IMG/VR virus record: IMGVR_UViG_3300017991_005548
Span: 1 to 64,000 of that record
DNA length: 64,000 bases
Direction: 5' to 3' (one strand)
In this document: piece by piece, positions 26,740 through 53,088 of the stretch
Layout: every line of letters begins with the position of its first letter
Numbering within the stretch: position 1 is the first letter of the stretch
The notes under the pieces: generated by a model
Told to the model about the DNA's origin: nothing
Database searches by the model: none
What the model saw: only the letters and a program-made list of their open reading frames with translations
Made by a program: the position numbers and the translations under genes

Positions 26740-26776
26740 AGTTGTTTTAGAACTCTGTTCGTTAAAACATCGTTCT

Positions 26777-28008: not shown

Positions 28009-28926
28009 TTATATGTTGAGTTTTTCCTTAAGAATTTTCCTAAATGTCTTGGCCGCACCTTCTGGGGTAGCATTTTCCAAGTACCATTGATAGCCGTTTT
28101 CGGCAATTTCCTTGATATTATACCGATTTTCTAAGTCTTTGAGATCAGTATCCTCATCAATATAGATATAATGTTTACCTTCAACCAGTGGATTATAGTA
28201 ATAGGGCTTGTAATTAAGCAGTAAAGGCTTCTTCATCATCATGTAATCGATTTCTCTCCGATTCTTCTTGTCAGTAACGACAGTTGACCTTCCACCAAGA
28301 ACGATACCATATTTACTTCTAGCCATATAATCTCGATATTCATCATCATTCAGTGGTCTTCCGGTTTTCTTCAAACCTTGATCGCTTCTGATGACCTCAA
28401 TTCCTTGTTTTTCTAACTCTGGAAGAAGCTTATGTCTGGCTTTCCAGTTCTTGCCACAGAAGAAACCAAGTCTATCAATTTCAACTTCTTGTTGAAGTTC
28501 TTCTTCTCTGCCAACAAACTTGGTGAACAAACGACTTGGAAAAAATGTCCAAGGACAGAACTTATCTCTGAACACTTGAAGTTCCTCAAGAGATTTTGGG
28601 ATCATCTTCTTTCTATTCATATATCTATGAACTCGTTTAGTAGAAACATGACAATCTTGGACTTTGATAATCAAATCAAAATCATAATTGTAAACTCCCA
28701 GAGAATAACATGGACTTGGATATTCCCACAAATCAAGATAGATCTTCTTACCTGCACACTGCAATATAGTAGCTCGATACCATCTTGTTACTTTTAATGC
28801 TTCCTCATGATAAAACATGTCGTAAAGATCACTGTTTTTGAGAGCATTCAAAAGGTATGGCATCCCTAGAGTACCACCATATCCGTCCAACTGCTTTTTA
28901 TTAATACCTAACTTGATTTTTTCCAC
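28009..28926 (-). CDS. Putative glycosyltransferase (GT-B, CgeB-like C-terminus)
   Basis: YRDYMARSKYGIVL...RREIDY...LVEGKHYI...IAENG. Confidence 0.6.
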   Translation of the reverse strand: MEKIKLGINKKQLDGYGGTLGMPYLLNALKNSDLYDMFYHEEALKVTRWYRATILQCAGKKIYLDLWEYPSPCYSLGVYNYDFDLIIKVQDCHVSTKRVHRYMNRKKMIPKSLEELQVFRDKFCPWTFFPSRLFTKFVGREEELQQEVEIDRLGFFCGKNWKARHKLLPELEKQGIEVIRSDQGLKKTGRPLNDDEYRDYMARSKYGIVLGGRSTVVTDKKNRREIDYMMMKKPLLLNYKPYYYNPLVEGKHYIYIDEDTDLKDLENRYNIKEIAENGYQWYLENATPEGAAKTFRKILKEKLNI

Positions 28927-28936
28927 TTTACTTCTC

Positions 28937-30247
28937 CTATGATCTAAATGGCAAATGTTTAATTAATTTCCTCTCGCCTTTTGTCTTTTGAGAAACTGGT
29001 TTTGGAGTCGGAGGAACTTCTTCAATCTTCTCTATCTTTGGTTCAACAGTAACAGTCTTAATATCAGTGTTGACCCTTTGGATATTCTGGTTACTGGACC
29101 CAACAGAAACGTCATCTCCCGTATTATCAACAGAAACTACACGATAAGATTTCTTAACTTCTGGGACTTCTTCAATCTCTGTAGTTCTAACAACAGGTTC
29201 TTGCGATTTCTTAACCTTAGCGGCAGTAGTCATTTCTCTTGATGCGGATATAAGTTCATCTCTTTTCTCAAGATTCTTTAAATAAGGTTTCTGAGCGTCT
29301 TCTGGCTCATCTTTCGTCTTATCCTTATCTCCTGGCTTACAATACATGCCCCAAGTTCTTTCATCCTCAACTTTTCCTAACTTTCCTGTCACTTCTTCCA
29401 TAGCCTCTGAGAATGGCATGTGAGGGAAACAAGTAAGACCAGAATCAGGATTACAGTTGTAAACCTCAAGTCCTTCTTCCTTGAAATATGGCTGAAGTTT
29501 GGGATAATATTCAGTATTCATTATCTTGTATGTCTTCTTATTGCAGTTAACAGCACCTTTCTCTCGTCTTTCATCAAAATGATAAGTGTAGTCTTCAGAC
29601 ATTGTGAAATCTGCACCCAAAAGATAAATTCTTCTAAAACCAAGCAAGAAAAGGATTCTGACAGCAGGAAGCATAACGCTTCTACCTCCACCATACTGTC
29701 CACTATTTCCCCAGTTAATTTTATCTTCGAAAAGCCAACGGCTTGCCTCAAATTTCTCATTCCTATGAAAGAAAACGCAATTAGGGCACTCGCCAACAAG
29801 AACTTTCTTGCCCTCTTTCTTCATTTCTGACCAAGTATCATTATCAAAAATTGGCTTCTCAGCATGAGCATGTGGAACAAACTTAGTAATTGCTGGATCA
29901 AGCCAAATTGATTTAAGAAATCTCTGAGGATCATCTACGCATGACCAAAAAGTTGGTCGAAAAGTCGCAGGTCCATTGTTTACCCCATAAGTGATGACCC
30001 CTGGTTTTTTTAACGCCGCAAGATCATACATCCCACTTACTAAACTTGGCCCATTAAGAATCAAAAAAGCAGAAGCTCCTTTGTATTGACCAACCAAATT
30101 TAACTGAGCGCACTCTCTGGTAAAGAAGAATGGAGTCTGCTGATAATATTCATTCGACACGCAATGTCCAAGGTGTCTATCTCGATGATGCCTGAATGTC
30201 TTAATATCATTGCCGTCTTTAAGTAAGCTTCTACGTCTGGTTCCCAT
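28937..30247 (-). CDS. DUF115/Maf/Cst-like transferase domain with charged C-terminal tail
   Basis: ILNGPSL, YGVNN, LGFRRIYLLGADF, VYNCNPDS motifs. Confidence 0.6.
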   Translation of the reverse strand: MGTRRRSLLKDGNDIKTFRHHRDRHLGHCVSNEYYQQTPFFFTRECAQLNLVGQYKGASAFLILNGPSLVSGMYDLAALKKPGVITYGVNNGPATFRPTFWSCVDDPQRFLKSIWLDPAITKFVPHAHAEKPIFDNDTWSEMKKEGKKVLVGECPNCVFFHRNEKFEASRWLFEDKINWGNSGQYGGGRSVMLPAVRILFLLGFRRIYLLGADFTMSEDYTYHFDERREKGAVNCNKKTYKIMNTEYYPKLQPYFKEEGLEVYNCNPDSGLTCFPHMPFSEAMEEVTGKLGKVEDERTWGMYCKPGDKDKTKDEPEDAQKPYLKNLEKRDELISASREMTTAAKVKKSQEPVVRTTEIEEVPEVKKSYRVVSVDNTGDDVSVGSSNQNIQRVNTDIKTVTVEPKIEKIEEVPPTPKPVSQKTKGERKLIKHLPFRS

Positions 30248-30276
30248 ATATATTCTCCATTAAGAACTTTTTTTCA

Positions 30277-30594
30277 TTATACAATAACCTCTTCACCAAA
30301 CTCAACATCGAACCCAGTTACTAGAAAGGTTTTTTCTTTTGTTTCGCCATTAAATGGTTTTACATAATATTCTACTACAATTTTAGTGAATTCATCAGCC
30401 GAGGCATCGAGTCGGATAGATTTAACCGCTCCATTGCTGATTTCTTCATTTTTTACATTACACTTTATATCCATTCCATGGATGTAGAACTGAGAATAGT
30501 GTTGTCTACCAAATATTCTTCCATCAGAAATGCAAATGGGGGATGGAAATGAAGAATCAAGTCTCCCTCCATGGAAATTACTATGTTCGGACAT
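30277..30594 (-). CDS. Hypothetical protein
   Basis: Start revised to MSEHS after a GAGG SD; weakly similar to the neighbour. Confidence 0.55.
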   Translation of the reverse strand: MSEHSNFHGGRLDSSFPSPICISDGRIFGRQHYSQFYIHGMDIKCNVKNEEISNGAVKSIRLDASADEFTKIVVEYYVKPFNGETKEKTFLVTGFDVEFGEEVIV

Positions 30595-30596
30595 CC

Positions 30597-30944
30597 TTAT
30601 ACCTCTATTACGTGCTCGTCCCATAGCTTTTGCGCTTCTTCTCTATCATTTGCTAAAAAATCAACATCTAAACGAGATATGGGGAATCTTGCAACCTTAC
30701 CTTTTTCCCCATTTGTCCCGTAAGTTTCAATTATTAAGTAACAGACATCTCCAGCAACAACCTCAATTGTGGCACGTTTAAGAGTATACTCATCTGGTAG
30801 TTCCCATGTATCTTTTGCGTCTATTTCAATCTTATCCCATGTTAACTTTTCAAAATCTGGACCATGTTCTCCGCTCATGTTACACATTTTTTTTGGACGA
30901 CCAAAAAGACAACAAAGACAAGTATCTGATCTTAATTTTTTCAT
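30597..30944 (-). CDS. Hypothetical protein
   Basis: 115 aa co-oriented ORF. Confidence 0.6.
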   Translation of the reverse strand: MKKLRSDTCLCCLFGRPKKMCNMSGEHGPDFEKLTWDKIEIDAKDTWELPDEYTLKRATIEVVAGDVCYLIIETYGTNGEKGKVARFPISRLDVDFLANDREEAQKLWDEHVIEV

Positions 30945-30947
30945 GAT

Positions 30948-31688
30948 TTACCTTTGGATATTTGGCCCACCCCTATCATGATTGAGATGATATTGAGGAA
31001 GAACATTTAACGGTCTTCTGCCACCCATATGAACTCTAAACTGTCGGTCAGATTTCGTTCTTCTCCAAACATCTCTAAGTCTGTGGCAGTATCTCCCTAC
31101 TTTCGTTCCATCTTCCTGAACATCACCCTTCTCTTTGATTGCCTCAACTCTTGCCAATTGAAAATATCCAGCACAGGTTTTTCTTCCGCTAATCCATTTC
31201 TTTGGCCAATCTTTGGGAATTTGAGCCACATCCTCGATTACACAAGGATAAACTCTCTCGTCATTTTCGAAATATTCTATGCAAAAGGGAATATCTAAAG
31301 AATGACGATCAGCCCCAAGAACTTTTGTTTCGTCTTTATAATCATCACTCTCTAGCTTCTTCTTAATATCATCAAAAAACATTGGATCATACACCATATC
31401 AGAATCGGCAAACAAAATCCAATCAGCTTCTGTTGCTCCTGCCCTCATATTTCGAGGAATAGCCCTATTAGGAGCCTGTTTAGGGGTCAATTCGACATCA
31501 AGTATGTTCAAACCCTTTTCTTTAAAAAAATCAATAACCTGAGGAGTTGTTGGATCTCCATTTTCAGGGGTATAAGAAATGCTAACCAGTATGTCTGGTA
31601 TATCTCCTTTCTGTTGCAATATCGAACTGAGCATCCAACACAATCTTCGTTGATATGAATGACAATGTATACAAATTTCTAATTTCAT
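30948..31688 (-). CDS. GT-A fold glycosyltransferase (GT2-like)
   Basis: RN...ADWILFADSD; GYFQL; HLNH. Confidence 0.7.
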   Translation of the reverse strand: MKLEICIHCHSYQRRLCWMLSSILQQKGDIPDILVSISYTPENGDPTTPQVIDFFKEKGLNILDVELTPKQAPNRAIPRNMRAGATEADWILFADSDMVYDPMFFDDIKKKLESDDYKDETKVLGADRHSLDIPFCIEYFENDERVYPCVIEDVAQIPKDWPKKWISGRKTCAGYFQLARVEAIKEKGDVQEDGTKVGRYCHRLRDVWRRTKSDRQFRVHMGGRRPLNVLPQYHLNHDRGGPNIQR

Positions 31689-31697
31689 AAAAACTCC

Positions 31698-32351
31698 TTA
31701 AGCTTTAACAAACCACCAAGATCTGATTACACCTCCAACAGCATGGATCTTATAACCATATCTCGCTCCATAATAATCTACTACCGTTTTGACATGATAA
31801 TCCAAACCTCTCCCCCAATAATCTTTCATGCCAGAATTCTCACCATCTTTATAATCATGACCTGCTACCACTCCACCCGTTCTAACTTTAGGAGTCCATG
31901 CATAGATATCATTAAATATTCCTTCCAAACTGTGGTCGCCATCGATGTATACAAAATCAAGAAGGCCATCTGGGATTTCCTGATAAACCTCAATACTAAA
32001 TGCCTTGACTAATTCAACCCTTCCAGCATCAATAAATTCTTTCAGATGATTCTCACAATCTTTTTGTCGATTACTTCCATCCTTGTCATACTTTTCTTTC
32101 CCATAACCAGATCCAAAATCATCAATCCATGGATCAATACAATAGTATTTCTGCAAATCTGATTTAGAAACCATGTGGTGAGAAAACGTCCCCTTGTCAA
32201 CCCCTATTTCTGCTCCGAATTGATATTTCATATCTTTGCAAAGCTTAGGAAAAAAGTGATCTCGGTACTTATTTTTTCCTTTCTCTTTAAGGATCTTACT
32301 CGCGACTTCTTCAACTTGATTGATTATTTGTTCATTCCTGTACTTCACCAT
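31698..32351 (-). CDS. Class I SAM methyltransferase (Methyltransf_24-like)
   Basis: AEIGVDKG, IDPW, DFVYIDGDH, GGVVAGHDY; start revised to MVKYR after GGAG. Confidence 0.85.
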   Translation of the reverse strand: MVKYRNEQIINQVEEVASKILKEKGKNKYRDHFFPKLCKDMKYQFGAEIGVDKGTFSHHMVSKSDLQKYYCIDPWIDDFGSGYGKEKYDKDGSNRQKDCENHLKEFIDAGRVELVKAFSIEVYQEIPDGLLDFVYIDGDHSLEGIFNDIYAWTPKVRTGGVVAGHDYKDGENSGMKDYWGRGLDYHVKTVVDYYGARYGYKIHAVGGVIRSWWFVKA

Positions 32352-32383
32352 AGAAAACTCCAGCATTATTGTATTCGAATTTA

Positions 32384-33175
32384 TTATACAGTTTCGTCGT
32401 AGATCCCACCCCATCCATTTGGGTTGGCCTTATAGGGTCTTGTCCCCCTCATCGCCTTGGTAAGAATCTTCTTGTTCTTCTCCTGACAAGCCAGATCATT
32501 TTTTAAATTTGGCTTAGAATGTGGTTGATGAAAAAGATTTATGCTTTCCATTGTCTCTCCAAGCCAAATAACCTTGGCTCCTGATCGCCCCATTCTTGTA
32601 AAAAGATCAAAATCTTCAGAACCCCACCCTACAAAAGCTTCATCAAAACCTCCGACTTTATGCCATTGATCAATGTGAGCACACTGACAGCCGCCAGCAG
32701 TAGTTCTTTTTTTGATTCTCCCCCGTCTACATGAAGCTAAATTTTCGAATGGGTCAAGTCTCCCTTTGTATATCTGATTAGCTATTTTTGGTTTCCAATA
32801 CATAGTCCTAGACTCAATGAAAACATTTGGAGCAACTCTCTTCAAAATCTCATCAACAAAAGTTGGCCCGAAAAAGATATCAACATCAGTGGTCATGATG
32901 TATGGAGTTCTAGCATTTCTAATTCCCACATTGTTCATCTTCGCTCTTTCAAATTCTTCCCCAAGAGGCTCTTGAACAATTCTAATCAATGGTTCGCATT
33001 CTCTGGATTCAAAAAACTTCTTAAGTTCATCATAATTCTTACTCCCACCATCAGCTATAACCACCTCAAAATCTTTATTGGTTTGCTTTTCTAATGATAA
33101 TAAGAAAAACTTTGTGATATTCTTTTTAAGGTCTAACCGATCCCTATTAGAAGCGGCTATAGTCAAGGTTTTCAT
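32384..33175 (-). CDS. GT2/GT7C-like glycosyltransferase
   Basis: VIADGGS, TDVD, GGFDEAFVGWGSED. Confidence 0.85.
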   Translation of the reverse strand: MKTLTIAASNRDRLDLKKNITKFFLLSLEKQTNKDFEVVIADGGSKNYDELKKFFESRECEPLIRIVQEPLGEEFERAKMNNVGIRNARTPYIMTTDVDIFFGPTFVDEILKRVAPNVFIESRTMYWKPKIANQIYKGRLDPFENLASCRRGRIKKRTTAGGCQCAHIDQWHKVGGFDEAFVGWGSEDFDLFTRMGRSGAKVIWLGETMESINLFHQPHSKPNLKNDLACQEKNKKILTKAMRGTRPYKANPNGWGGIYDETV

Positions 33176-33909
33176 TACTTCTCCTTTGGCGGGGCGTATC
33201 TATACGATGGAAGTCCCTGATAGTGTATAAAATGAACTCTTTTGGAATTAATCTCTTTCTTTGTATATGAAGAATACTTCCATAAATTGCAAAATTCTGG
33301 CTCATGCAGTTCCCAGTATTTCTCTTGTCCCATCCATCCTCCAGATCTACGATCCATCGCCCTTGCAAGTGGAGGCTCCGCTGAATTCCCAGGTTTCTTT
33401 TCCCAACATTCTATGATCTCATCTGGGAAGGTCTTATCTCTAATGTAAAGGAATCCTGCATTAGGAAGCTTTCTGGTATCCTTCTTGCCTCTCCAGAAAC
33501 ATTTCCTGCGCTTATATTGCTGTAAATTAGCTTGACAGTATTCCTTCTTCCCCATAACTTCCCAGAAATCATTCGGCAATGCTTTTTTTGCGTGACAATC
33601 CCAATCAATAAACACAATCTCATCATAATCTTCCATGGCTATCTTTAAAATATCCAATTTATGTCGATATTGATTAGAAGACAAATCATATGGATGTGGA
33701 TCTTTGTCCAGAAGAACCAAATTATCCATTGAAAATCTATCCCTGAGATGATTATAATTCTCTTCTCCGAATATATAGGTTACAAATGGTGCTGTGAATG
33801 GATTCTTCAGAGTTTTATTGATATCATATTCCATCTTATAACGTCTTTCCACAACCCTATTCTCTCTTGAGAAAATCCCCCACAGTCCTCTTATAAATGC
33901 TCTTTTCAT
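33175..33909 (-). CDS. Putative GT-A glycosyltransferase, KRxFIRGLWG family copy 4
   Basis: RHKL, FIDWD (DxD), PNAGF; start revised to MKRAF by paralog alignment. Confidence 0.6.
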   Translation of the reverse strand: MKRAFIRGLWGIFSRENRVVERRYKMEYDINKTLKNPFTAPFVTYIFGEENYNHLRDRFSMDNLVLLDKDPHPYDLSSNQYRHKLDILKIAMEDYDEIVFIDWDCHAKKALPNDFWEVMGKKEYCQANLQQYKRRKCFWRGKKDTRKLPNAGFLYIRDKTFPDEIIECWEKKPGNSAEPPLARAMDRRSGGWMGQEKYWELHEPEFCNLWKYSSYTKKEINSKRVHFIHYQGLPSYRYAPPKEK

Positions 33910-33920
33910 AAGTTTCTCCT

Positions 33921-34652
33921 TTACCAACCAACCCTCAATCTTCTGTGGACCTGTTTTTTATTTAAGTGTTTGAAGCACCTGTTTTTTGATGCATATTGTT
34001 CTTTGGAAAATACCTTGCACTCATCTAGATAGAAAAAATCAGGCTCAAAATTATTCCAATACTCTTCCATACCTTGCCATCCACCGAGAAGATCATCTGT
34101 GTATTTTGCAATAACTCTTTCTTCAGACCATGGCCTACCCATATCTTCCCATAACTGCAATAGATCCTCTGCCACTTTCTTCTCTCTACAATAGACAAAA
34201 CTAGCACAAGGGATCATCTTCAAATTTTCAGTTCTCCACTTGGCTTTTCTTCTTTTGTAAGATCGAAGTATAGCTTGTAGAGGTTGCTTTTTGCTAAGGA
34301 CTTCCCAGAAATCTTCTGGCAATCTTTTGATTGGATATGTGTCCCAATCAAGAAATACAACTTCATCAAATTCCTGCATACCTTGATAAAGAACCTCCAA
34401 CTTATGTCTGAACTGTTCTGTATCTATATCCCAGACAATCGGCCTCTTATCGACCAGTTTCGCGTTAAAACCCTCATCTACCAGGAACTTATAGTTATCT
34501 TCCCCAAATACATAAGCGGTAAAAGGCTCGTTCCATGGATTCGCTTTCAAAACCTTAATGTCGTTATCTATTTTGGAGCGCCTTTTATATAAACGACGAC
34601 CTTGATGGTCATGAATGCCCCACAAACCTCTTATAAAGCCTCTTTTCATCAA
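33921..34652 (-). CDS. Putative GT-A glycosyltransferase, KRxFIRGLWG family copy 3
   Basis: RHKL, FLDWD; close paralog of 35205..35936. Confidence 0.6.
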   Translation of the reverse strand: MMKRGFIRGLWGIHDHQGRRLYKRRSKIDNDIKVLKANPWNEPFTAYVFGEDNYKFLVDEGFNAKLVDKRPIVWDIDTEQFRHKLEVLYQGMQEFDEVVFLDWDTYPIKRLPEDFWEVLSKKQPLQAILRSYKRRKAKWRTENLKMIPCASFVYCREKKVAEDLLQLWEDMGRPWSEERVIAKYTDDLLGGWQGMEEYWNNFEPDFFYLDECKVFSKEQYASKNRCFKHLNKKQVHRRLRVGW

Positions 34653-34653
34653 C

Positions 34654-35214
34654 TTAATCCTTATCTAAATCACTTACTTTGAAAAGCCAACTAGTATCAA
34701 TGAATTTCTTATGTGGTATCCCTAAAACTTCATGAACAGCCTTCCTAACAGAATCTCTCTTAATATCATGGCCAGTAATATATCCAGTTTTCTTGACTTT
34801 TGGCAACCACTTTATAATATCATTCTTAACGGCTTCATATTGATGGTTGCCGTCAATATATACCAAATCTAAGCTCTCATCTTCGAACTTATCAACTGCC
34901 TCATCTCCAGGCATTTTGTATTTTTTAAGTTTATCTTTGTGTGGAGCCATTTTTTGATCGAACATCTTCTCTACAAGCTCCATTGGCCTGCTTTTAGAAG
35001 CGCCATCACTATCATCATAACCATTCTGCCAAGGGTCAATGGCATGAATCATTTTGATATTATTGTCAGATGCAAAAATTGACGTACTATCTCCTGAATA
35101 ACAACCAATTTCTACCATAACAATATCTTTCATATCACTAACGTATTTAATCATATTCTTAAGGCCGTTTATGAGTTTGGCCTTTCTTCGCATTATATTC
35201 CTACTCATTTCCAA
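34654..35214 (-). CDS. Class I SAM methyltransferase (Methyltransf_24-like)
   Basis: VEIGCYSGDS, IDPW, DLVYIDGNH, ITGHD. Confidence 0.85.
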   Translation of the reverse strand: MEMSRNIMRRKAKLINGLKNMIKYVSDMKDIVMVEIGCYSGDSTSIFASDNNIKMIHAIDPWQNGYDDSDGASKSRPMELVEKMFDQKMAPHKDKLKKYKMPGDEAVDKFEDESLDLVYIDGNHQYEAVKNDIIKWLPKVKKTGYITGHDIKRDSVRKAVHEVLGIPHKKFIDTSWLFKVSDLDKD

Positions 35215-35936: not shown

Positions 35937-35946
35937 TATTTATACC

Positions 35947-39328: not shown

Positions 39329-39385
39329 AAATGCAAATTCCTTGTGAGGGTTACTCGATTTTATTATACAGGGATAATTGTGGGA

Positions 39386-39640: not shown

Positions 39641-39670
39641 AATAACACCTCCAAGTATTTATTCAATACT

Positions 39671-47135: not shown

Positions 47136-48058
47136 ATTATTTCCTCATACTGTTTACACATATCTTCTTTCCCATAATCATAAAACGCCATACGATTCTG
47201 GCAAATTTTATAATGTATATAGTCACTCTGCAATACTCTTATTATCTCAAATAACTCTTCTGCATCTTTAAACGTCCTTACAAAATCCTTTGCATACTCA
47301 ATACAAGCGTCAGCTTCGCTATGAATGAGAGGAATTAACCCACAACTCAGCCCTTCTGGTATATGGTTGGGGCCTGGTTCAAACAATGATGCTGATACAT
47401 AAACATCATGCTCCCTTAGTAATTCTGGCAATGCATGATAAGGTTGAGCCGATATCTTTCGACAATACTGTAAACTACCTTTCATCGGCCTCCCTATAAA
47501 AGTGAATTGAGCAATCTGTGGATTTCTATTACAAAATCTATCCAATTCTTTGTAAATAGGATAACCCTTATATATGTTATCTGAGAAATGGTGAGTTACG
47601 ATCTTTAGTGGGGACATTGGCCTTCTTGATCTATCCTCTCTATAAAAAAGAGTTCTATCGCTACCATTTCTAATGACAACCGAATTAGAAACATTCATCC
47701 CCTTATCTATAAAATACCCTCTGAGCCATTCACTTACAAATACAGTCTTGTCAGCAACCCTTTTATTAGATTGAATAATGAGATCATCCAACCCCTTGCT
47801 GTTTGGTCTATGAGCATCATTTTCATTGATTCGATGAATGACCTTAGCCCCTTTCTTCCTTTGCTCTTCAACTTCCTCCAAACTAAATGTAACGCTTCTA
47901 TCACGAACATCCATCAGAACAATTACGTCAACGTCATTCGACAGATCAAAAACTACATCATGTCCTTTGCCAGAGAAATAGGCAGACAACATCCTAAGGA
48001 CTTGATTCCCCCCTCCGTATGGACCATCTACTATTCTTCTGTTAAAAGCTATTTTCAT
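47132..48058 (-). CDS. GT4-like glycosyltransferase
   Basis: GG, FVS, NG, KG, EPGPNHIPE (Ex7E). Confidence 0.8.
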   Translation of the reverse strand: MKIAFNRRIVDGPYGGGNQVLRMLSAYFSGKGHDVVFDLSNDVDVIVLMDVRDRSVTFSLEEVEEQRKKGAKVIHRINENDAHRPNSKGLDDLIIQSNKRVADKTVFVSEWLRGYFIDKGMNVSNSVVIRNGSDRTLFYREDRSRRPMSPLKIVTHHFSDNIYKGYPIYKELDRFCNRNPQIAQFTFIGRPMKGSLQYCRKISAQPYHALPELLREHDVYVSASLFEPGPNHIPEGLSCGLIPLIHSEADACIEYAKDFVRTFKDAEELFEIIRVLQSDYIHYKICQNRMAFYDYGKEDMCKQYEEII

Positions 48059-48804
48059 TAATCTCTGAACCTACGAACTCTTATGCTACCTTTCTTCGCT
48101 AGTTTATAATGTTCATCTATAAGCTTCATAGTTTTCTTTCTTTCGATCTCAGCCTCTCTAAGATTAGGACCATGGCCACTATCATCTGGACTATGAACCC
48201 ATGTCTCAACCATAATTGAACCCTTGTTAGAGTGATTTATGATATTCTGAGTTACATCATAAGGATTTGGGAGATGCTCATATACATCCATAATACAGAC
48301 GATATCAAAATTACATGAGAATTTAGGATTCGAATAATCCGCTGTTATCTCATGCACTTCGCATTCAACCCCTGCCTTGTTCAACCTCCACTTAGCAAAC
48401 TCAAGATGTTCTCCAGCTACATCAACCAAAACAAACTTCATGTTCGACACATCTTTAGTTTGAGTGACCCAATGAGTAAATGGAGCGATTCCACATCCAT
48501 ATTCCAAAACAACACTGTTATCTTTTAGATATGGATTAAAAAATCTTCCATAATTGAACCCTCTTCTATAAACCATCTGACGGAATACCTGCCATGCCCC
48601 AATATCTTTATAGAAATCCATTTTTGATTGTAAAGATTCTCTAGGCTTCATATCCCAAAGGTCTTCAAAAGTCATTCCACTTACAGCTTCACATGTATCG
48701 GACTCTGGCAAATCAGGCTTACGCCCCTTTGCTCTTGTCCCCAATATCTCTGCCTCTTCTGGAGTTACTCCATAATACTCACATAAATCATCACACCAAA
48801 CCAT
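48058..48804 (-). CDS. Class I SAM methyltransferase
   Basis: LEYGCGI, DVYEHLPNP. Confidence 0.8.
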   Translation of the reverse strand: MVWCDDLCEYYGVTPEEAEILGTRAKGRKPDLPESDTCEAVSGMTFEDLWDMKPRESLQSKMDFYKDIGAWQVFRQMVYRRGFNYGRFFNPYLKDNSVVLEYGCGIAPFTHWVTQTKDVSNMKFVLVDVAGEHLEFAKWRLNKAGVECEVHEITADYSNPKFSCNFDIVCIMDVYEHLPNPYDVTQNIINHSNKGSIMVETWVHSPDDSGHGPNLREAEIERKKTMKLIDEHYKLAKKGSIRVRRFRD

Positions 48805-48815
48805 GTTAATTCCTC

Positions 48816-49442
48816 TTATTTGTTATAAAGTATGCATAGACCAAATTTGTCTCTTATAAACTCTATTCTTACATCGTCATCTTCATAAACGTCTTCTGTA
48901 ACAACTTCAGATCCAAATATCTCTTCAAGAACATAAAGTTCCCATGCGGCATATACCTTCTTGTTCTGAAAATTGTTTGAAGCTCTCTTAAGAGCCTCAT
49001 AGACATTCATAGAGATATCATGGGTCATGAAGTTAACCTCATTCTCCAAAGCTAATTTTACTAAATTCCTGGTCAGTATATATGGATGGGCATCAAGGAA
49101 AAGAAGGTCTGGGTTATATTTCTCAAAAAGTCCTTCCTCTTTCCCAGTTACATCCTCAACATGCAAAGTAAAGTCTTTCTTGTCCATGAACTTCACTTTG
49201 TCTTCAATATCCCAAGAGTGAATCTCAAGATCTATTTCCAGGTATTTTGCAATATCATAAAAAACTCTGGTTGAACATCCATACTGCACTCCAAACTCCA
49301 AAAGAACTTTGGGTCTATTCTCTTGGAAATATTCAAAAATACCTCTCACTTCTTCTTTAGAAACTGTTTTGGCTTTTTTCAGTATCCTTGGCAATTGACT
49401 ATTATCAAAAAAATCATCGAAATTCTTCATATTCTTCTCCAT
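48816..49442 (-). CDS. Class I SAM methyltransferase
   Basis: LEFGVQYGCST, FLDAH, THD. Confidence 0.7.
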   Translation of the reverse strand: MEKNMKNFDDFFDNSQLPRILKKAKTVSKEEVRGIFEYFQENRPKVLLEFGVQYGCSTRVFYDIAKYLEIDLEIHSWDIEDKVKFMDKKDFTLHVEDVTGKEEGLFEKYNPDLLFLDAHPYILTRNLVKLALENEVNFMTHDISMNVYEALKRASNNFQNKKVYAAWELYVLEEIFGSEVVTEDVYEDDDVRIEFIRDKFGLCILYNK

Positions 49443-49444
49443 CT

Positions 49445-50323
49445 TTAAACAAACTCCTGAAATAACTGGTCAAATCTTGGTACAATTACTTCATGTAAAA
49501 AATTCTGCACATTTTGATAATTATACATGACATAATCCTTACTCTTAAATATCTTTTTGGCGATCTCATCAGGCTCACATAAACAATTGGGGTGAATAAC
49601 CTCAGAAACAATCCCGACATCAGTAGCAACAACAGGTACTTTCCTATAAGTAGCTTCTAAAACTGCTTGTGGACCGCCCTCTGTTCTAGATGAAATAATA
49701 TAAGCATCCAACTTGTCATAAAGAGGATTTAAATTATCAACTTTATGATGATATTCATATCGTATACCTCGTTTCTCAAGTTCACCAATGACATACTCTC
49801 TACAAAAACCTGCCAAAACTACATTGACCTCGACCGATTTGTTAATTTCTTCAATAGCGTCGATTAGAATATCTGGTCCTTTCACTAACTTTGCTTTTCT
49901 TGTCCTCGTTTCTCCATCCTTTTGAAAAGAACCGATGTTGAAAAACTTGTTTGGCTCAACTTCATACTTTGGTTCCCTGGCTTTTGATAACACCCAGTAA
50001 GGAATCTGCCTAATATTGTCATTTACGCCGAGATCCTGCATCTCTTTAAAAGTGAATCTGTTGTTGGTTACGCAAGCAACTGCTTTCTTCAACAGATCCA
50101 ATTTATACATCTTAATCTGTGGCTTATTAATGTGATGTAAATGCGCTACTACTGGTCTTCCAAAATTTAATGCTCTACCAAGTGACCAAAAATCAACAGA
50201 CCAGATTATATCAGGTTGTTTTCTCGGTCCAACAACCTCAAGGCTTGTATATTTTTGGAAATCTTTCTTGATATTGTCAAGAACCCAATTCGCACCATCA
50301 GAAACAACTGCTATCTTTGTCAT
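49445..50323 (-). CDS. GT4-like glycosyltransferase
   Basis: KGPD, EGGPQAVLEA, VATDVG. Confidence 0.85.
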   Translation of the reverse strand: MTKIAVVSDGANWVLDNIKKDFQKYTSLEVVGPRKQPDIIWSVDFWSLGRALNFGRPVVAHLHHINKPQIKMYKLDLLKKAVACVTNNRFTFKEMQDLGVNDNIRQIPYWVLSKAREPKYEVEPNKFFNIGSFQKDGETRTRKAKLVKGPDILIDAIEEINKSVEVNVVLAGFCREYVIGELEKRGIRYEYHHKVDNLNPLYDKLDAYIISSRTEGGPQAVLEATYRKVPVVATDVGIVSEVIHPNCLCEPDEIAKKIFKSKDYVMYNYQNVQNFLHEVIVPRFDQLFQEFV

Positions 50324-51354
50324 TCTCCAAGGACTCCCTCTATCAGTTTAACGAATTCTTTAGCCCTTGCATCGATAGTATGATGATTCTTGAAAGTGTC
50401 CTTCGCGTTAGCAACAATTCGTTCTCTTTCCTGATCGTTATCAACATAATACTTGATTCTCTCAAGAAAATTGTCTTGAGTTACCGACACATAGTTAAAC
50501 CCATCTTCCAAATGAAGTTCCTTTTCTCCATATGGCTTCTCACCAACGTATAATGTCCCACAACCCATAGACTCGAAGATTTTATTGAAAGCTAAGTGAT
50601 ATCTCCCTCCACAACTTACCAAAATCTTCGATTTACTAATAACTTTCGCGTACTCATCTCTAACCATAGGAGTATGTTTGAAGTTGAAACCGCAATGTGG
50701 ATAGTTTTTGTATACAATCCCTATCTTATCTGAAATTCCAGATAATGCTTTATGCATACCTCTTCTAAACCTGTAAAAATTACCCATGGCACCAAGAGTA
50801 ATGACATCATGTTCTTTAGGCAGTCCATAATCCTTGAAACATGTCTCCTCAACACACCTCGGATGAGCTACGAATTTCATATGATCTCGTATTCTCTTGT
50901 CAAAAAACGAGTTAAAATCTTTTGGATTTGAATATGGTGGGGTAAAACAGCAGAACATATGACTGAATTGCAACCCTCCGAGATCGTTCGAAAATTTCCT
51001 CGGTTTTCTTGCCCAAAAATCACTAAGAGCAAAAACCTTCTTTACTCCCTTTACCTTCCCAAACCCAGTTGGGAAATTCCATAGGTTTTCAGGTATATTG
51101 TAGTGATTTATATAAATGTCACCAACTTTCTCATTTGGAGTGAAGTAACTGTAAACAATATCAGGTTTGTCATCTCCATATACTTGAGAAATAATCTCTC
51201 CCAGGTCGGTATGCTTATAATTTGGCCATCCTGGTCCATACATCTGAGTATCACATGCCCTATTGACACATTCCATGTCGTAGATCATGTTCCCAGAATG
51301 CCATCCCTCCCGATTAACATTCAAAAGCAATACTTTATACTTACTCAGAGACAT
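50320..51354 (-). CDS. CgeB/Glyco_trans_1_2-like glycosyltransferase
   Basis: KIFESMGCG, ERERIVANA, HHT...RA; start revised to MSLSK after AGGAGG. Confidence 0.75.
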   Translation of the reverse strand: MSLSKYKVLLLNVNREGWHSGNMIYDMECVNRACDTQMYGPGWPNYKHTDLGEIISQVYGDDKPDIVYSYFTPNEKVGDIYINHYNIPENLWNFPTGFGKVKGVKKVFALSDFWARKPRKFSNDLGGLQFSHMFCCFTPPYSNPKDFNSFFDKRIRDHMKFVAHPRCVEETCFKDYGLPKEHDVITLGAMGNFYRFRRGMHKALSGISDKIGIVYKNYPHCGFNFKHTPMVRDEYAKVISKSKILVSCGGRYHLAFNKIFESMGCGTLYVGEKPYGEKELHLEDGFNYVSVTQDNFLERIKYYVDNDQERERIVANAKDTFKNHHTIDARAKEFVKLIEGVLGE

Positions 51355-52276
51355 ATTCCCTCCTTTCGAAATACAATGCGAACATAGCCTTAAAACCATA
51401 AATCGCCACATCCCAAGACCATCTACTAACTATTTCTGCCTGAAAATTCTTCGCCTGTTCAATTCTAAACTCATCATCTTTCATTTTTTCTATTGCTTCA
51501 CAAAGACTATCAACATTCCTATCAATTAGCAGTCCTTTTTCTCCATCTTTTATCATATCTGTAGCGGCCCCACTTCTTGTTGAAATAGGAGCCAAACCCA
51601 TTGCTCCAGCTTCCATGAGGGGGTTATTCAAACCTTCAGTTTTGGACATACAGACATGGATATTGGCTTTTGAGTAGAAATATGGCATTTCTTCAAGTGT
51701 CAATTTTCTATTGTATTCAGCGGTTATGATTTCTGCATTAACCTTTTTACAAGCTTGTTTAACCAGATCAAAACCCTTGTTGGCAGATCCACGACCAGAA
51801 ACACTTACCTTTATCGGACCTTCCAAAGGTTGGAATGCATTCTCATTCTTCTTTATGTCAAATACATCTAAATTCACTCCATGTCCAACATTCAAAAGTG
51901 GCTTGTCATCCACTATACCACTAAAAACGTCAAACATTCTTGAATTTACTACATGGAATATAGAGCATTTATCTTTGATCGAAGCACATCTTCCTGGGAA
52001 CCCATGTTCATACAATCCTTTGGGACCTTCTGGATGCTCTCTATGTAGAAATTCACATCTCAACCCCATTATCGTTTTCTCTTTGGGTGGATATCCACCC
52101 CTCAAAGGAATTGGATCAAGAACATACACTAAATCGTAGTCTTTAGACATATTCTTGATACCCTGCTTTCTATAAGCGATATCTATATCATATTCTGTAA
52201 TGCGTTTCTGGATCTCATGACAATGTCTGTCAAAAATCCACCCTTTCTGATCTGCGACTAATAAAATCTTCTTCAT
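51341..52276 (-). CDS. GT4-like glycosyltransferase
   Basis: HGVN, KG, EGLNNPLMEAGAMG. Confidence 0.85.
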   Translation of the reverse strand: MKKILLVADQKGWIFDRHCHEIQKRITEYDIDIAYRKQGIKNMSKDYDLVYVLDPIPLRGGYPPKEKTIMGLRCEFLHREHPEGPKGLYEHGFPGRCASIKDKCSIFHVVNSRMFDVFSGIVDDKPLLNVGHGVNLDVFDIKKNENAFQPLEGPIKVSVSGRGSANKGFDLVKQACKKVNAEIITAEYNRKLTLEEMPYFYSKANIHVCMSKTEGLNNPLMEAGAMGLAPISTRSGAATDMIKDGEKGLLIDRNVDSLCEAIEKMKDDEFRIEQAKNFQAEIVSRWSWDVAIYGFKAMFALYFERREYVSE

Positions 52277-53088
52277 AAACTACTCCAGTATCTTTGCAGT
52301 GGAAGTGTTAGTATGTCAATTGTATTTCTCCCTGCCTTACATGAATTACAATCGTAAAATTCGTTAAATCTCTGACTTTGGGGATGACCTCCATACCAAT
52401 GCAGAGCATAAGATTCCTGAGTGATATGAATAACGTCCTCATATACCTTATTTATCAGGTAAGACTCAGGAATTGGATAGAAATAATTTGGAGGAGCATT
52501 AAAAAGAACATTCTCACTTTCCCACTCTTCTCGATGCTTAGAAAACAAATCCCGAAACATGAATGGCCCCAAACTATTGTAATCCTTAGGATCATAACAG
52601 TCCATCATCTCATTCATAATTTGTTTTACGACAGGACAATACTTCTTTGCCCCTATAACGCCAACAGGAGCATAAATACCACAAGATTGCGCCCTATATA
52701 TGCTGTAGATAAAATCAACGTCAGGAAGGCTGTAAAATGGTCTTAGTATTATCTGATCTGTATCAAGATAATACCCACCATTATTGTAAAGCCACCACCA
52801 TCTAAAAAGATCGGATTGATAATTTGGGGCATAAGTGGGGAAAAGGTTTGATTCGACTACTTTTACACCGAGTTTAGACAAGGCTGGGATGTAGTCAGTA
52901 AACAAACGGCCCTCTCGCTGGAAATCCTGCTTCTCTACTCCCCATTTAATGTCTTTGGCAGACTGCTTGGAGAGATAGAGTTCGATCTCAGCGTCAGGAT
53001 GGTGTTTCCTTAAAGAAACAAAAGTCAGGAACCGAAGATATGACAACTCAGTTCCTGACCAAAAAAGTCCAAATTTTAACGGAATCAT
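52273..53088 (-). CDS. GT32-like (DXD sugar-binding) glycosyltransferase
   Basis: SDLFR..LY..GGYYLDTD, LGP, FYP, HW. Confidence 0.8.
   Translation of the reverse strand: MIPLKFGLFWSGTELSYLRFLTFVSLRKHHPDAEIELYLSKQSAKDIKWGVEKQDFQREGRLFTDYIPALSKLGVKVVESNLFPTYAPNYQSDLFRWWWLYNNGGYYLDTDQIILRPFYSLPDVDFIYSIYRAQSCGIYAPVGVIGAKKYCPVVKQIMNEMMDCYDPKDYNSLGPFMFRDLFSKHREEWESENVLFNAPPNYFYPIPESYLINKVYEDVIHITQESYALHWYGGHPQSQRFNEFYDCNSCKAGRNTIDILTLPLQRYWSSL

Follow-up and report, generated by a model that had tools for sequence, protein, structure and literature searches.

A huge uncultured phage of at least 509 kb, from marine and sediment samples, carries a 31-gene operon of soluble sugar-adding and sugar-tailoring enzymes without any export genes. 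Comparison with other phages suggests that this operon coats the phage's own serine-rich, mucin-like proteins with sugars inside the infected cell. The probability of this reading is estimated at about 0.6; no glycan, acceptor or virion location has been shown. The window considered here is a 64,000-nt stretch (positions 1 to 64,000 of IMG/VR record IMGVR_UViG_3300017991_005548). An earlier note, based on the sequence of the window alone, had described a co-oriented glycan-building cluster without multi-pass membrane proteins, and this observation was confirmed. Its interpretation, namely a methylated, sulfated, nonulosonate-bearing virion glycocalyx built in the cytoplasm on serine-rich proteins, is only partly supported.

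Gene content of the array

The array consists of 31 ORFs of 84-616 aa that lie on the minus strand from 53088 down to 28009, with gaps between neighbours of -71 to +57 nt. No transmembrane segment was detected, although the prediction relied on a simple hydropathy scan, in which no 19-residue window reached the Kyte-Doolittle threshold of 1.6 (maximum 1.52). A recount matches that of the earlier note: 18 glycosyltransferase-like genes, 6 methyltransferases, 2 sulfotransferase-like genes, a NeuB-like gene, a CMP-sugar synthetase-like gene and 3 unknowns (30277, 30597 and 39386).

The strength of these assignments varies. Among the glycosyltransferases, seven have solid Pfam matches (32384, 41908, 43114, 49445, 50320, 51341 and 52273). 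Matches for 28009, 30948, 46149 and 47132 are weak and below threshold. Fold-level evidence is available for 28009, 28937, the four paralogues 33175, 33921, 35205 and 35947, as well as 37478, 43785 and 46149. Five methyltransferases are assigned by Pfam (31698, 34654, 42525, 44917 and 48058), and the sixth, 48816, by similarity to CmcI. Only one of the two sulfotransferase-like genes (39671) is solid. The operon can be divided into two parts: a core (28009-39328), which is syntenic in other large phages, including those designated L036, L116 and L118, and an extension (39671-53088), which was not seen in the relatives examined.

Table 1. Features of the window, with the sequence and structure evidence for each.
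Position	Strand	Feature	Evidence
28009-28926	-	Compact GT-B glycosyltransferase (305 aa); last gene of the operon; conserved partner directly downstream of the Maf-like gene in large phages	Weak Pfam Glyco_trans_1_2; AF2 model, pLDDT 88; Foldseek top hit POGLUT1/Rumi, E 1e-6, TM 0.50; VIA Z 11.5-13.4 to many GT-B enzymes, acceptor class not resolved; homologues of 49-51% identity in the same position in L036, L116 and L118
28937-30247	-	Maf-like/sialyltransferase-fold transferase (436 aa; Pfam MptE-like, formerly DUF115); candidate CMP-nonulosonate (or CMP-Kdo):Ser O-transferase	Pfam MptE-like E 1e-5, below the curated cut-off; sequence searches against the PDB found nothing; AF2 model pLDDT 68, core residues 40-300 at pLDDT 70-94; Foldseek top hit Maf 5mu5; VIA Z 13.3 to the Maf catalytic domain, about 10 to Cst-I/II, 10.9 to MptE; more than 467 metagenomic homologues; NGPS and other invariant motifs; prophage homologue hits phrog_4603, 'alpha-2,3-sialyltransferase'
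30277-30944	-	Two small unknown genes, 115 aa each (30277-30624, 30597-30944)	No Pfam match; soluble
30948-31688	-	GT2-like GT-A transferase (weak); part of the conserved core	Pfam Glycos_transf_2 E 0.008; homologues of 58-68% identity in L036 and L116
31698-32414	-	Methyltransf_24 O-methyltransferase	Pfam E 8e-15; paralogue of 34654-35214
32384-33175	-	GT2/galactosyltransferase-7C-type GT-A transferase	Pfam Glyco_tranf_2_2 E 1e-13 and Glyco_transf_7C E 7e-11
33175-36693	-	Four paralogous GT8/GT77-like GT-A transferases (33175-33927, 33921-34652, 35205-35936, 35947-36693) with a Methyltransf_24 gene (34654-35214) between them	Paralogues at 34-70% identity; invariant D-W-D motif; Atlas structural matches TM 0.66-0.72 to Nucleotid_trans and Glyco_transf_8 clusters; methyltransferase E 1e-19
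36675-37481	-	Sulfotransferase-like protein (weak)	Profile hits only cytosolic sulfotransferases, E 0.035-0.09; invariant PAPS-loop-like motif; paralogue at 96535-97407 of the record designated G000
37478-39328	-	616-aa protein read as two tandem GT8-like GT-A domains; first gene of the conserved core	Atlas feature and structure matches, the structure being that of the nearest Atlas cluster and not a model of this protein; homologues of 65-67% identity in L036 and L116
39386-39640	-	84-aa unknown, conserved next to the core	46-55% identity in L036 and L116
39671-40612	-	PAPS-type sulfotransferase	Pfam Sulfotransfer_3 E 3e-21 and Sulfotransfer_1 E 2e-11
40609-41310	-	NeuB-type nonulosonate synthase barrel (233 aa; too short to include the C-terminal SAF domain of canonical NeuB)	Pfam NeuB E 8e-33; PDB matches PseI 8h2c E 8e-18, SpsE 1vli E 2e-14, NeuB
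41285-41911	-	CMP-nonulosonate/Kdo synthetase-like cytidylyltransferase	Pfam CTP_transf_3 E 7e-19
41908-43788	-	GT2 (41908-42558), Methyltransf_24 methyltransferase (42525-43121), GT2 (43114-43788)	Pfam E 6e-29, 5e-11 and 8e-8
43785-47135	-	Two paralogous TagF-like GT-B transferases (43785-44927, 46149-47135) flanking a 411-aa protein with a C-terminal class I methyltransferase domain (44917-46152)	Paralogues at 30% identity, E 1e-54; Atlas TM 0.67 to Glyphos_transf, not NeuC; methyltransferase E 1e-16
47132-49442	-	Weak GT-B (47132-48058), class I methyltransferase (48058-48804), CmcI-like methyltransferase (48816-49442)	Pfam, sub-threshold for the GT; PDB CmcI 2br3 E 1e-3
49445-53088	-	Four glycosyltransferases: GT1/4 (49445-50323), CgeB-type Glyco_trans_1_2 (50320-51411), GT1/4 (51341-52276), GT32-type with DXD region (52273-53088); first genes of the operon	Pfam E 4e-16, 1e-14, 9e-16 and 2e-8
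1-3798	-	N-terminal 1266 aa (50% Ser) of a 2527-aa Ser-tract protein that continues beyond the window; proposed acceptor	Open frame with 638 Ser; full ORF checked in the record designated G001 alone
3810-8578	-	Two Ser-tract proteins: 1075 aa (25% Ser, central protease-like domain) and 508 aa (35% Ser); proposed acceptors	Composition and sequences; phrog_20754 protease E 3e-36
11787-12995	-	402-aa Ser-tract protein (21% Ser)	Composition and sequence
14524-20104	-	Six genes of similar size (292-328 aa) in tandem, inferred to be paralogues from size and arrangement alone; the one scanned (14524-15510) has a Laminin_G_3 (ConA-like) domain	For 14524-15510, phrog_10356 'virion structural protein' E 8e-35 and Pfam Laminin_G_3 E 1e-10; four of the six have Ser-rich windows of 45-53%
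24098-25516	-	472-aa protein with DUF285 (BspA-type repeat) and a Ser tract (60% in the best window)	Pfam E 6e-25

The phage genome and its serine-tract proteins

The earlier note had named a cellular chromosome, or export genes located elsewhere, as findings that would overturn its reading, and neither was found in the 509 kb that could be read. The element is a phage, as it encodes a portal, TerL and a tail protein, together with 59 tRNAs and a tmRNA. No Wzx, Wzy, ABC exporter, priming transferase or GtrA/B-type gene occurs in the 509 kb that could be read of the 524,692-bp source contig, of which about 16 kb was not seen. The only multi-TM proteins are an M50 peptidase and a 323-aa unknown about 198 kb upstream of the window, roughly 226 kb from the operon. 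Elsewhere, the phage encodes enzymes for donor synthesis, including APS kinase (E 1e-43) and GDP-mannose 4,6-dehydratase (Gmd, E 3e-147) with two SDR enzymes.

The serine-rich genes are real, with 1660 serines encoded on minus-strand genes at 1-25.5 kb of the window. However, the earlier picture requires three corrections. Positions 1-3798 are only the N-terminal part of a 49% Ser protein that runs off the window. Serine tracts are not confined to 1-25 kb but occur genome-wide, in 32 proteins, the largest of 4276 and 2527 aa. Further sugar genes lie about 110-150 kb upstream of the window. The Ser-tract proteins carry adhesin- or lectin-type domains (NHL, Laminin_G_3 and DUF285) and a protease, and the 4276-aa protein lies about 3 kb downstream of a tail-protein gene, with a 1027-aa Ser-tract protein between them. 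Nevertheless, the Ser-tract proteins gave almost no hits to known virion families, and nine large ones gave no informative PHROG hit. Their virion location rests on neighbourhood, on domain types and on one 'virion structural protein' hit.

Coupling of the Maf-like family to serine-rich proteins

Independent support for serine-rich acceptors is comparative, and could not have been available to the earlier note. The core gene 28937 has the predicted fold of Maf, the enzyme class that places nonulosonic acids on Ser/Thr of flagellins in the cytoplasm, and its structural score to Maf exceeds that to sialyltransferases. It also shares an operon with the NeuB-like and cytidylyltransferase genes. 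In Phycisphaerae prophages, a distant lineage, and in related viral contigs, the homologue is followed by a Ser-rich protein of 350-536 aa, which holds for 39 of 57 viral loci with downstream sequence. In genome contigs, 68 of 70 loci have a Ser-rich ORF within 3 kb, with 70 such ORFs in 472 kb near the gene against 2 in 746 kb further away. The pair lies in the tail module, after the tape-measure gene and next to a methyltransferase. However, the small-phage homologues form a single lineage at 70% identity or more, and the tight adjacency therefore counts as roughly one evolutionary observation.

At the genome level, all 10 fetched genomes that carry the family have Ser-tract proteins, with 17 of 812 genes in six large ones and 32 of 476 in the phage described here. 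The control was 0 of 1350 genes in 79 PhoH-anchored phage loci (Fisher p = 5e-8 and 9e-20). The closest large relative, G002, has the core module but only two modest Ser-tract proteins. Synteny of the core extends to a 182-kb marine scaffold. None of 13 relatives encodes NeuB, and the donor of the Maf-like enzyme is therefore uncertain. Structure prediction for the complex of a prophage enzyme with its Ser-rich neighbour gave weak support only. The score was 0.37 against a best control of 0.00, where the mark was reached by 58 of 80 solved complexes and 2 of 110 mismatched pairs; the runs agreed in at least 4% of contacts, and the partner's pLDDT was at least 43.

Competing readings and the proposed function

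Of the ALTERNATIVES raised in the earlier note, remodelling of the host surface is not excluded, although it is considered unlikely. In this reading, the soluble transferases would act at the cytoplasmic face on host undecaprenyl-phosphate-linked intermediates (LPS, capsule or other envelope glycans), relying on the host's own priming enzyme, flippase and polymerase, and would change the infected cell's surface, for example to block superinfection. Most bacterial GT2, GT4 and GT8 enzymes of surface-glycan loci are likewise soluble or peripheral, so the lack of TM segments does not exclude lipid-linked acceptors. TagF-like GT-B enzymes classically act on lipid-linked polymers, and the lack of NeuB in relatives shows some dependence on host sugar metabolism. 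Against this stand the absence of export and priming genes from the 509 kb that could be read and the coupling of the Maf-like family to Ser-rich phage proteins inside tail modules. Moreover, an investment of 18 transferases is hard to justify for a cell that is about to lyse, and the core is conserved across phages with GC from 32% to 65%, which presumably have very different hosts and envelopes.

Equally doubtful is the glycosylation of acceptors other than the serine tracts, such as capsid or tail-tube subunits (as in mycobacteriophages), or a free or protein-primed polysaccharide that is released at lysis or wraps the particle. The tracts would then be mere flexible linkers. The known phage virion glycosylation is on the capsid and tail-tube C-termini (Freeman et al. 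2023, cited in PMC12619734), G002 has few Ser tracts despite its core module, and the acceptor specificity of every transferase is unresolved. However, the local and genome-level coupling to Ser-tract proteins speaks against this reading, as does the Ser/Thr O-linkage for which the Maf class is known (PMC3426422; bioRxiv 10.1101/2020.06.03.131540).

DNA hypermodification, in which the transferases would decorate modified bases of the phage genome with complex glycans to evade restriction, is the least likely reading: although the operon follows DNA/RNA-metabolism genes (RecD-like helicase, NUDIX, PNK) and has the same position after the helicase in L118, phage GT-B enzymes such as T4 AGT share the fold of 28009 (Z 11.7), which does not tell protein acceptors from glycan or DNA acceptors, and multi-sugar DNA glycans are known (Pyle et al. 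2024, cited in PMC12619734), no thymidylate-synthase-family hydroxymethylase, the usual source of the hydroxymethyl handle, was found in either record, nonulosonate, sulfate and six methyltransferases are not known to have a precedent on DNA, and the coupling to Ser-rich proteins is left unexplained.

The explanation that accounts best for these observations is that the operon is a cytoplasmic protein O-glycosylation factory of a huge tailed phage. The analysis itself establishes the gene content, the solubility of the products, the synteny, the fold assignments and the genomic coupling of the Maf-like family to Ser-rich proteins. That the serines are the acceptors, which enzyme starts the chain, the composition of the glycan and the presence of the Ser-tract proteins on the virion are inferences made without biochemical or proteomic data, and the description 'methylated, sulfated, nonulosonate-bearing' is a reading of enzyme families rather than of a structure.

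In this view, soluble phage enzymes would make activated donors during infection: a CMP-linked nonulosonic acid (NeuB-like enzyme plus cytidylyltransferase), a GDP-6-deoxyhexose (Gmd plus reductases encoded elsewhere) and PAPS (APS kinase), while other donors would come from the host. About 18 soluble transferases would then build oligosaccharides step by step directly on the serine tracts of the phage's own large adhesin-like proteins, and the chains would be tailored by O-methylation and sulfation. No lipid carrier, flippase or exporter would be needed, because the products would leave the cell at lysis, most likely as decorations or fibres of the virion.

Gene content of the operon and nature of the element

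The window is coded almost entirely on the minus strand, and 31 ORFs of 84-616 aa lie between positions 53088 and 28009. Neighboring ORFs are separated by -71 to +57 nt, and no 19-residue window reaches the usual Kyte-Doolittle membrane threshold, the maximum being 1.52. The ORFs were called by a simple longest-ORF rule, and transmembrane segments were predicted from hydropathy alone, which is a crude method. This is one operon-like array of soluble proteins. Pfam searches give solid matches for seven glycosyltransferases, five methyltransferases, one sulfotransferase, a NeuB-type synthase, and a CMP-sugar-type cytidylyltransferase, as well as sub-threshold transferase hits for four more genes. 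The genes without Pfam matches were resolved in other ways, and are referred to here by their starting coordinate. Four of them are paralogues of one another (34-70% identity, with an invariant D-W-D motif), and their Atlas models match GT8/GT77-type GT-A transferases at TM 0.66-0.72. PDB sequence and profile searches with this four-paralogue family, as with gene 28937, returned nothing, and only structure prediction and the Atlas resolved these proteins. The 616-aa protein looks like two such domains in tandem, which rests on sequence features and on the structure of its nearest Atlas cluster, because the Atlas holds no model of the protein itself. The proteins 43785 and 46149 are paralogues with a TagF-like GT-B fold; the weak Epimerase_2 hit of 46149 had suggested the NeuC epimerase, but this identity was rejected because the hit resolves to the TagF-like GT-B. 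The protein 48816 resembles the CmcI methyltransferase, while 36675 weakly resembles sulfotransferases and has a PAPS-loop-like motif. The recount therefore gives 18 transferase-like genes, 6 methyltransferases, 2 sulfotransferase-like genes, NeuA-like and NeuB-like genes, and 3 unknowns. The observation made in the earlier note holds, since this recount equals the one given there, although about half of the transferase assignments rest on fold-level or weak evidence.

The window is the start of a 296,327-bp IMG/VR record (G000), and the same DNA lies inside a second record of 476,248 bp (G001), which extends 212 kb upstream. The two records differ by 2 nt in the first 4.5 kb and by a 1-nt offset later. 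G001 ends inside the gene for a 4276-aa serine-repeat protein, so the repeats appear to break assemblies. One protein of the operon is recorded on a contig of 524,692 bp. The two overlapping records, when joined, give 508,680 bp and 689 ORFs, with about 90% of the coding on one strand, 59 tRNA genes (five of them tRNA-Ser), and a tmRNA. A portal protein (E 2e-47), a large terminase (E 5e-28), and a tail protein are present, together with helicases, a Lon-type protease, and ribonucleotide reductase, whereas the major capsid protein was not identified in the sequence read. The element is a huge tailed phage of the jumbo class (Caudoviricetes, genome over 200 kb), not a chromosome. IMG/VR labels both records as provirus, but a cellular chromosome or provirus was rejected because the records are overlapping pieces of one element with phage hallmark genes, a one-sided strand bias throughout, and 59 tRNAs; the label is best read as an artefact of trimming. 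The 98% completeness estimates for both records cannot both be right. The DNA recurs in two sediment metagenomes and one seawater metagenome.

A hydropathy scan of all ORFs found only two proteins with four or more hydrophobic segments, about 135-200 kb upstream of the window. Both were considered as exporters and rejected: one is an M50 peptidase, and the other is a 323-aa protein with about 4 segments and no family, about 226 kb from the operon. No Wzx, Wzy, ABC exporter, or priming transferase was found in the 509 kb read, which leaves out about 16 kb of the source contig. Upstream of the window, the phage also encodes APS kinase (E 1e-43), GDP-mannose 4,6-dehydratase (E 3e-147), and two further SDR epimerase/reductases, and can therefore supply PAPS and a GDP-6-deoxyhexose itself. 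The nonulosonate pathway is only partial. A NeuB-type condensing synthase (Pfam NeuB E 8e-33, with PDB matches to PseI, SpsE, and NeuB) and a CMP-activating cytidylyltransferase (CTP_transf_3 E 7e-19) are present. However, the NeuB-like protein is 233 aa and matches only the barrel of the model, leaving no room for a C-terminal SAF domain, and none of the enzymes that make the hexosamine precursor (NeuC, or PseB/C/H/G, or LegB/C/H/G) was identified. Consequently, the pathway must draw on the host, although the three SDR enzymes encoded upstream could contribute.

The operon consists of a conserved core and a lineage-specific extension. The core recurs in the same order in three other places: a 182-kb marine scaffold (L116), a 161-kb viral contig (L036, record G002), and a 19-kb metagenome contig (L118), where it again follows a RecD-type helicase. 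Its gene order is the tandem GT8-like protein, the sulfotransferase-like protein, GT8/77-like paralogues interleaved with Methyltransf_24 genes, GT2/7C, a weak GT2, the Maf-like gene, and a compact GT-B. In two of these relatives, L116 and L118, a LAGLIDADG homing-endonuclease-like ORF sits directly upstream of the first core gene (the homologue of 37478), between it and the genes before it. The extension holds the sulfotransferase, NeuB-like and cytidylyltransferase genes, GT2, TagF-like, and GT1/4/32-type transferases, and four methyltransferases. It was not seen in those relatives, and none of 13 related records has NeuB. Outside the operon, one of the two beta-propeller proteins encoded upstream is sialidase-like; by visual inspection no FRIP motif or Asp boxes were seen in it, and it had no match among solved structures. 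A sialidase-like protein next to a nonulosonate operon could be a glycan-binding or receptor-destroying virion protein. The polynucleotide kinase-phosphatase bordering the operon and the RNA ligase farther upstream look together like an RNA-repair pair, and a poly(ADP-ribose)-polymerase-like enzyme, also encoded upstream, is unusual in a phage as far as is known.

Coordinates of the operon, its surroundings, and related features in the records examined
Record	Coordinates	Strand	Feature
Window	28009-53088	-	Operon of 31 ORFs
Window	28009-39328		Conserved core of the operon
Window	39671-53088		Lineage-specific extension of the operon
Window	1-3798		First 1266 residues of the 2527-aa Ser-tract protein
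Window	14524-20104		Six similar-sized genes in tandem
Window	9997-11520 and 25592-26853		Two arrays with eleven tRNA genes in total
Window	10087-10962		HNH-like ORF beginning 3 nt from the first tRNA
Window	53130-54557	-	Polynucleotide kinase-phosphatase (AAA_33 plus PNK3P/HAD) bordering the operon
Window	59021-60112 and 60167-61174	- and -	Two beta-propeller proteins about 6 kb upstream of the operon: one BNR_2 sialidase-like (E 6e-32), the other with NHL repeats (E 5e-25), like the N-terminus of the 4276-aa Ser-tract protein
G001	1-212353		Part of the element upstream of the window, joined to G000
G001	212354 onward		Position of the window
G001	74967-75716	-	249-aa M50 (site-2 protease family) membrane peptidase
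G001	98363-99388	-	T4 Rnl2-type RNA ligase beside the APS kinase
G001	117465-118790	-	441-aa protein with WGR, PARP regulatory, and PARP catalytic domains (E 1e-27)
L116	1089-1922		LAGLIDADG homing-endonuclease-like ORF
L118	3300-4175		LAGLIDADG homing-endonuclease-like ORF
L090 (prophage-type locus)	10750-12339		Ser-rich neighbor of the prophage transferase

The predicted Maf-like enzyme and the serine-rich proteins

Gene 28937 has a hit to the Pfam MptE-like model (PF01973, DUF115) at E 1.2e-5 and 25.5 bits, which is below the 34.6-bit cut-off and covers only the C-terminal part of the model. Several homologues carry a precomputed PF01973 hit. More than 467 metagenomic homologues at 50-74% identity were found, and they share invariant motifs, including an NGPS motif like the GNGPSL of CstII-type sialyltransferases. 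The AlphaFold model of 28937 has a mean pLDDT of 68, with the core at 70-94. The best structural match is Maf, the flagellin nonulosonic-acid glycosyltransferase (PDB 5mu5; Foldseek top hit, E 7e-4; VIA Z 13.3 over 206 residues of the Maf catalytic domain, which has a sialyltransferase-like fold, a GT-A variant). It is followed by MptE kinase (Z 10.9) and by bacterial and mammalian sialyltransferases (Z 8-10, with Cst-I/II at about 10). Maf enzymes transfer pseudaminic or legionaminic acid, and also Neu5Ac and Kdo, onto Ser/Thr of flagellins in the cytoplasm (PMC3426422; bioRxiv 10.1101/2020.06.03.131540). The neighboring 28009 protein is predicted with confidence to be a compact GT-B (pLDDT 88). 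Foldseek ranks the protein O-glucosyltransferase POGLUT1 first, but this cannot be read as the function of 28009, because VIA gives equal scores to many GT-B enzymes, including a DNA glucosyltransferase.

Fourteen proteins of the element have at least 18% Ser (5303 serines), and 32 have a 40-residue window with at least 45% Ser (7002 serines). One of the main ones has 4276 aa (52% Ser) with N-terminal NHL repeats, and lies about 3 kb downstream of a tail-protein gene, after a 1027-aa Ser-tract protein. Another has 2527 aa (49% Ser) and lies partly in the window. The window also encodes a 1075-aa protein with a protease-like core, a 508-aa protein at 7052-8578 with a repeat part, a 402-aa protein, a protein with a DUF285 repeat, and the six similar-sized tandem genes, the one scanned of which has a ConA-like lectin domain and hits a "virion structural protein" family. 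The enzymes of the operon are Ser-poor (3-9%). A PHROG scan of nine other large Ser-tract proteins gave only one family, of unknown function. The location of these proteins on the virion is therefore an inference from neighborhood and domain types.

To provide an independent comparison, homologues of 28937 were obtained from viral contigs (80 loci) and from prokaryote genomes (80 loci). Most belong to 30-50-kb high-GC phages, which the genome hits identify as prophages of Phycisphaerae (Planctomycetota) chromosomes, while the nearest cellular-bin hits to the enzyme of the window itself are in Verrucomicrobia MAG contigs. Homologues lie in Phycisphaeraceae and Tepidisphaera chromosome-level MAGs. 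In the prophages, the enzyme of roughly 300 aa, which hits the PHROG family named alpha-2,3-sialyltransferase, is preceded by a methyltransferase and followed immediately by a 350-536-aa protein with a short conserved N-terminus, long and variable Ser/Gly/Thr tracts, and a conserved central domain. This domain may be a Hint/intein-like autoprocessing domain, a reading based only on its SNC...HND boundaries, and it is flanked by Ser/Gly tracts whose length and composition vary greatly between near-identical prophages. The cassette lies downstream of the tape-measure gene, in the tail module.

The next gene is Ser-rich in 39 of 57 viral loci that have downstream sequence, and most exceptions are the large phages, where the next gene is the GT-B. 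In the genome set, 68 of 70 loci have a Ser-rich ORF within 3 kb, with 70 such ORFs in 472 kb near the gene against 2 in 746 kb further away. These adjacency statistics cannot be treated as many independent events, because the prophage enzymes form one lineage at 70% identity or more, and the adjacency is close to a single evolutionary event that has been conserved. All ten fully fetched genomes that carry the family have Ser-tract proteins, although G002, the closest relative with the core, has only two modest ones. In contrast, 79 control loci anchored on PhoH in other phages (1.38 Mb), which are not matched for structural modules, have 0 among 1350 genes (Fisher p = 5e-8 for the other large phages and 9e-20 for this one). 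Several of these control loci contain homologues of genes of the window, with 6 hits for the NeuB-like gene, 4 for the cytidylyltransferase, and 14 for the GT2 at 41908. Nonulosonate genes therefore seem to recur in other uncultured phages that lack Ser-tract proteins in the stretches sampled. A predicted complex of a prophage enzyme with its Ser-rich neighbor gave weak support only, scoring 0.37 against a best control of 0.00. That mark was reached by 58 of 80 solved complexes and 2 of 110 mismatched pairs, the runs agreed in at least 4% of contacts, and the pLDDT of the partner was at least 43.

Relation to known glycosylation systems

The closest comparison is with the Maf (motility-associated factor) flagellin glycosyltransferases, including Aeromonas Maf1 (PMC3426422) and the Maf enzymes using CMP-Neu5Ac and CMP-Kdo (bioRxiv 10.1101/2020.06.03.131540). 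In the predicted model, gene 28937 shares their catalytic fold, the comparison being confined to the catalytic domain. Both are soluble cytoplasmic enzymes, 28937 lies in one operon with NeuB-like and CMP-synthetase-like genes, and the proposed acceptor is Ser of a protein that ends up outside the cell. However, sequence similarity does not go beyond the sub-threshold Pfam hit, the proposed acceptors are low-complexity Ser tracts of phage proteins, and relatives lack NeuB. The gene does not lie in a flagellar glycosylation island but in a transferase operon of a phage, and none of the proteins scanned, in searches not dedicated to flagellin, matched a flagellin family.

Glycosylation of serine-rich-repeat adhesins in Gram-positive bacteria (GtfA/GtfB, Gtf3, and GT8-type enzymes), and of Ser-Asp repeats by SdgA/SdgB, likewise involves very long Ser-rich repeat proteins with globular binding domains, modified stepwise in the cytoplasm by several soluble GT-B and GT8-type enzymes encoded nearby. 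Very long Ser-rich repeat proteins with a non-repeat domain are present here. GtfA, SdgB, and Asp1 appear among the structural neighbors of 28009, and a Gtf3-type cluster among those of the nearest Atlas cluster of 37478, but these matches are at the level of the fold only, with GtfA and Asp1 as generic GT-B neighbors. No specific GtfA/GtfB pair was seen. No multi-pass membrane protein of the SecY2 type was found, so an accessory Sec (SecA2/SecY2/Asp) export system is not evident, and release would be by lysis. There are also many more enzymes here, together with putative sulfation, methylation, and nonulosonate functions.

In mycobacteriophage virion glycosylation (Freeman et al. 2023, Cell Host Microbe; PMC10527164, cited in PMC12619734), phage-encoded glycosyltransferases modify the structural proteins of the phage in the cytoplasm without export genes. 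That system has a few transferases next to the capsid genes, with acceptors at the C-termini of the capsid and tail-tube subunits, whereas here there are 31 genes, a Maf-like enzyme, and proposed Ser-tract acceptors. Giant viruses (Mimivirus fibril glycan clusters, and chlorovirus capsid glycans with GMD, A064R, and A075L) use large gene sets to make their own nucleotide sugars, and build methylated glycans on virion proteins independently of host export pathways. The present phage also encodes GDP-mannose dehydratase, Atlas neighbors of the GT8/77-like paralogues include Nucleocytoviricota clusters, and A075L is among the fold matches of 28009. It differs in being a tailed phage with a presumably bacterial host, in its nonulosonate and sulfate modules, and in the proposed mucin-like Ser-tract acceptors.

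In Bacillus spore crust and exosporium glycosylation (SpsE legionaminic-acid synthase and CgeB-type transferases), glycosylation takes place in a compartment that later lyses, so that no exporter is needed. SpsE is a close NeuB-type match, and PF13524, the family that includes Bacillus CgeB, matches 50320. That is a cellular differentiation system rather than a virus, with no shown homology beyond these two families. Surface polysaccharide loci dependent on Wzx/Wzy or ABC transporters also contain a dense cluster of GT2, GT4, and GT8 transferases with methyl- and sulfotransferases and nonulosonate genes. Their defining membrane components (priming phosphoglycosyltransferase, flippase or ABC exporter, polymerase, and chain-length regulator) were not found in the operon or in the 509 kb read.

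Proposed mechanism and its significance

The best-supported reading is cytoplasmic, carrier-free, stepwise O-glycosylation of the phage's own Ser-tract proteins, with methyl and sulfate tailoring and release at lysis, and its probability is estimated at about 0.6. In this view, the system would work like flagellin glycosylation by Maf, like glycosylation of serine-rich-repeat adhesins, like spore-surface glycosylation, and like the virion glycosylation of mycobacteriophages and giant viruses. The interpretation of the earlier note, that the acceptors are cytoplasmic and most simply the serines of the neighboring proteins, is partly supported. The gene content, the conserved gene order, the fold assignments, and the genomic coupling of the family to Ser-rich proteins are results of the analysis, whereas transfer of a CMP-activated nonulosonic acid (or Kdo) to Ser/Thr, the serines as acceptors, the presence and composition of any glycan, and the virion location are inferred from context.

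Two alternatives remain possible but are considered unlikely, and neither is favored over the other. The transferases may act on host lipid-linked glycans using host export, or they may modify other acceptors, such as capsid or tail subunits or a free polymer. DNA hypermodification is very unlikely, being disfavored by the coupling to Ser-rich proteins and by the absence of a thymidylate-synthase-type dCMP/dUMP hydroxymethylase, as PF00303 gave no match in G000 or G001, while 10 of 14 control genomes matched.

A more speculative possibility, which is improbable on present evidence, is that the Ser-tract proteins are phage "mucins", that is, virion fibres carrying sulfated, methylated, deoxyhexose- and nonulosonate-containing glycans that mimic the sulfated algal or marine polysaccharides on which Planctomycetota and Verrucomicrobiota feed. 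The polysaccharide-capture machinery of the host would then bind the particle, so that the glycan coat would act as bait for adsorption. More generally, a transferase-plus-Ser-tract cassette would define a widespread, undescribed protein O-glycosylation system of phages of the PVC (Planctomycetota-Verrucomicrobiota-Chlamydiota) superphylum. The link to these hosts rests only on where homologues are found, namely Phycisphaerae chromosomes and Verrucomicrobia MAG contigs, and the bait idea is speculation.

The principle that viruses glycosylate their own particles is known, but experimentally shown virion glycosylation in phages is not known to extend beyond a few mycobacteriophage transferases. 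What differs here is the scale (31 genes plus donor genes), the Maf-like enzyme, the predicted nonulosonate, sulfate, and methyl chemistry, and the proposed mucin-like acceptors. A megablast search with the operon and tblastn searches with both versions of the enzyme gave no match in 50,697 GenBank phage records. In the literature searched, no paper was found on a phage-encoded Maf-like enzyme paired with Ser-rich proteins, and the "moraphage" paper only mentions glycosyltransferases in general. If the reading is right, huge phages can carry a giant-virus-scale glycosylation apparatus together with mucin-like acceptor proteins, and a minimal, testable version of the system (methyltransferase, Maf-like transferase, and Ser-rich tail protein) sits in prophages of Phycisphaerae chromosomes. 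It would also add a family of soluble Ser-directed glycosyltransferases for glyco-engineering. In that case, phage particles in sediments and seawater may also present complex sulfated glycans, which would bear on adsorption, aggregation, grazing, and the fate of viral carbon.
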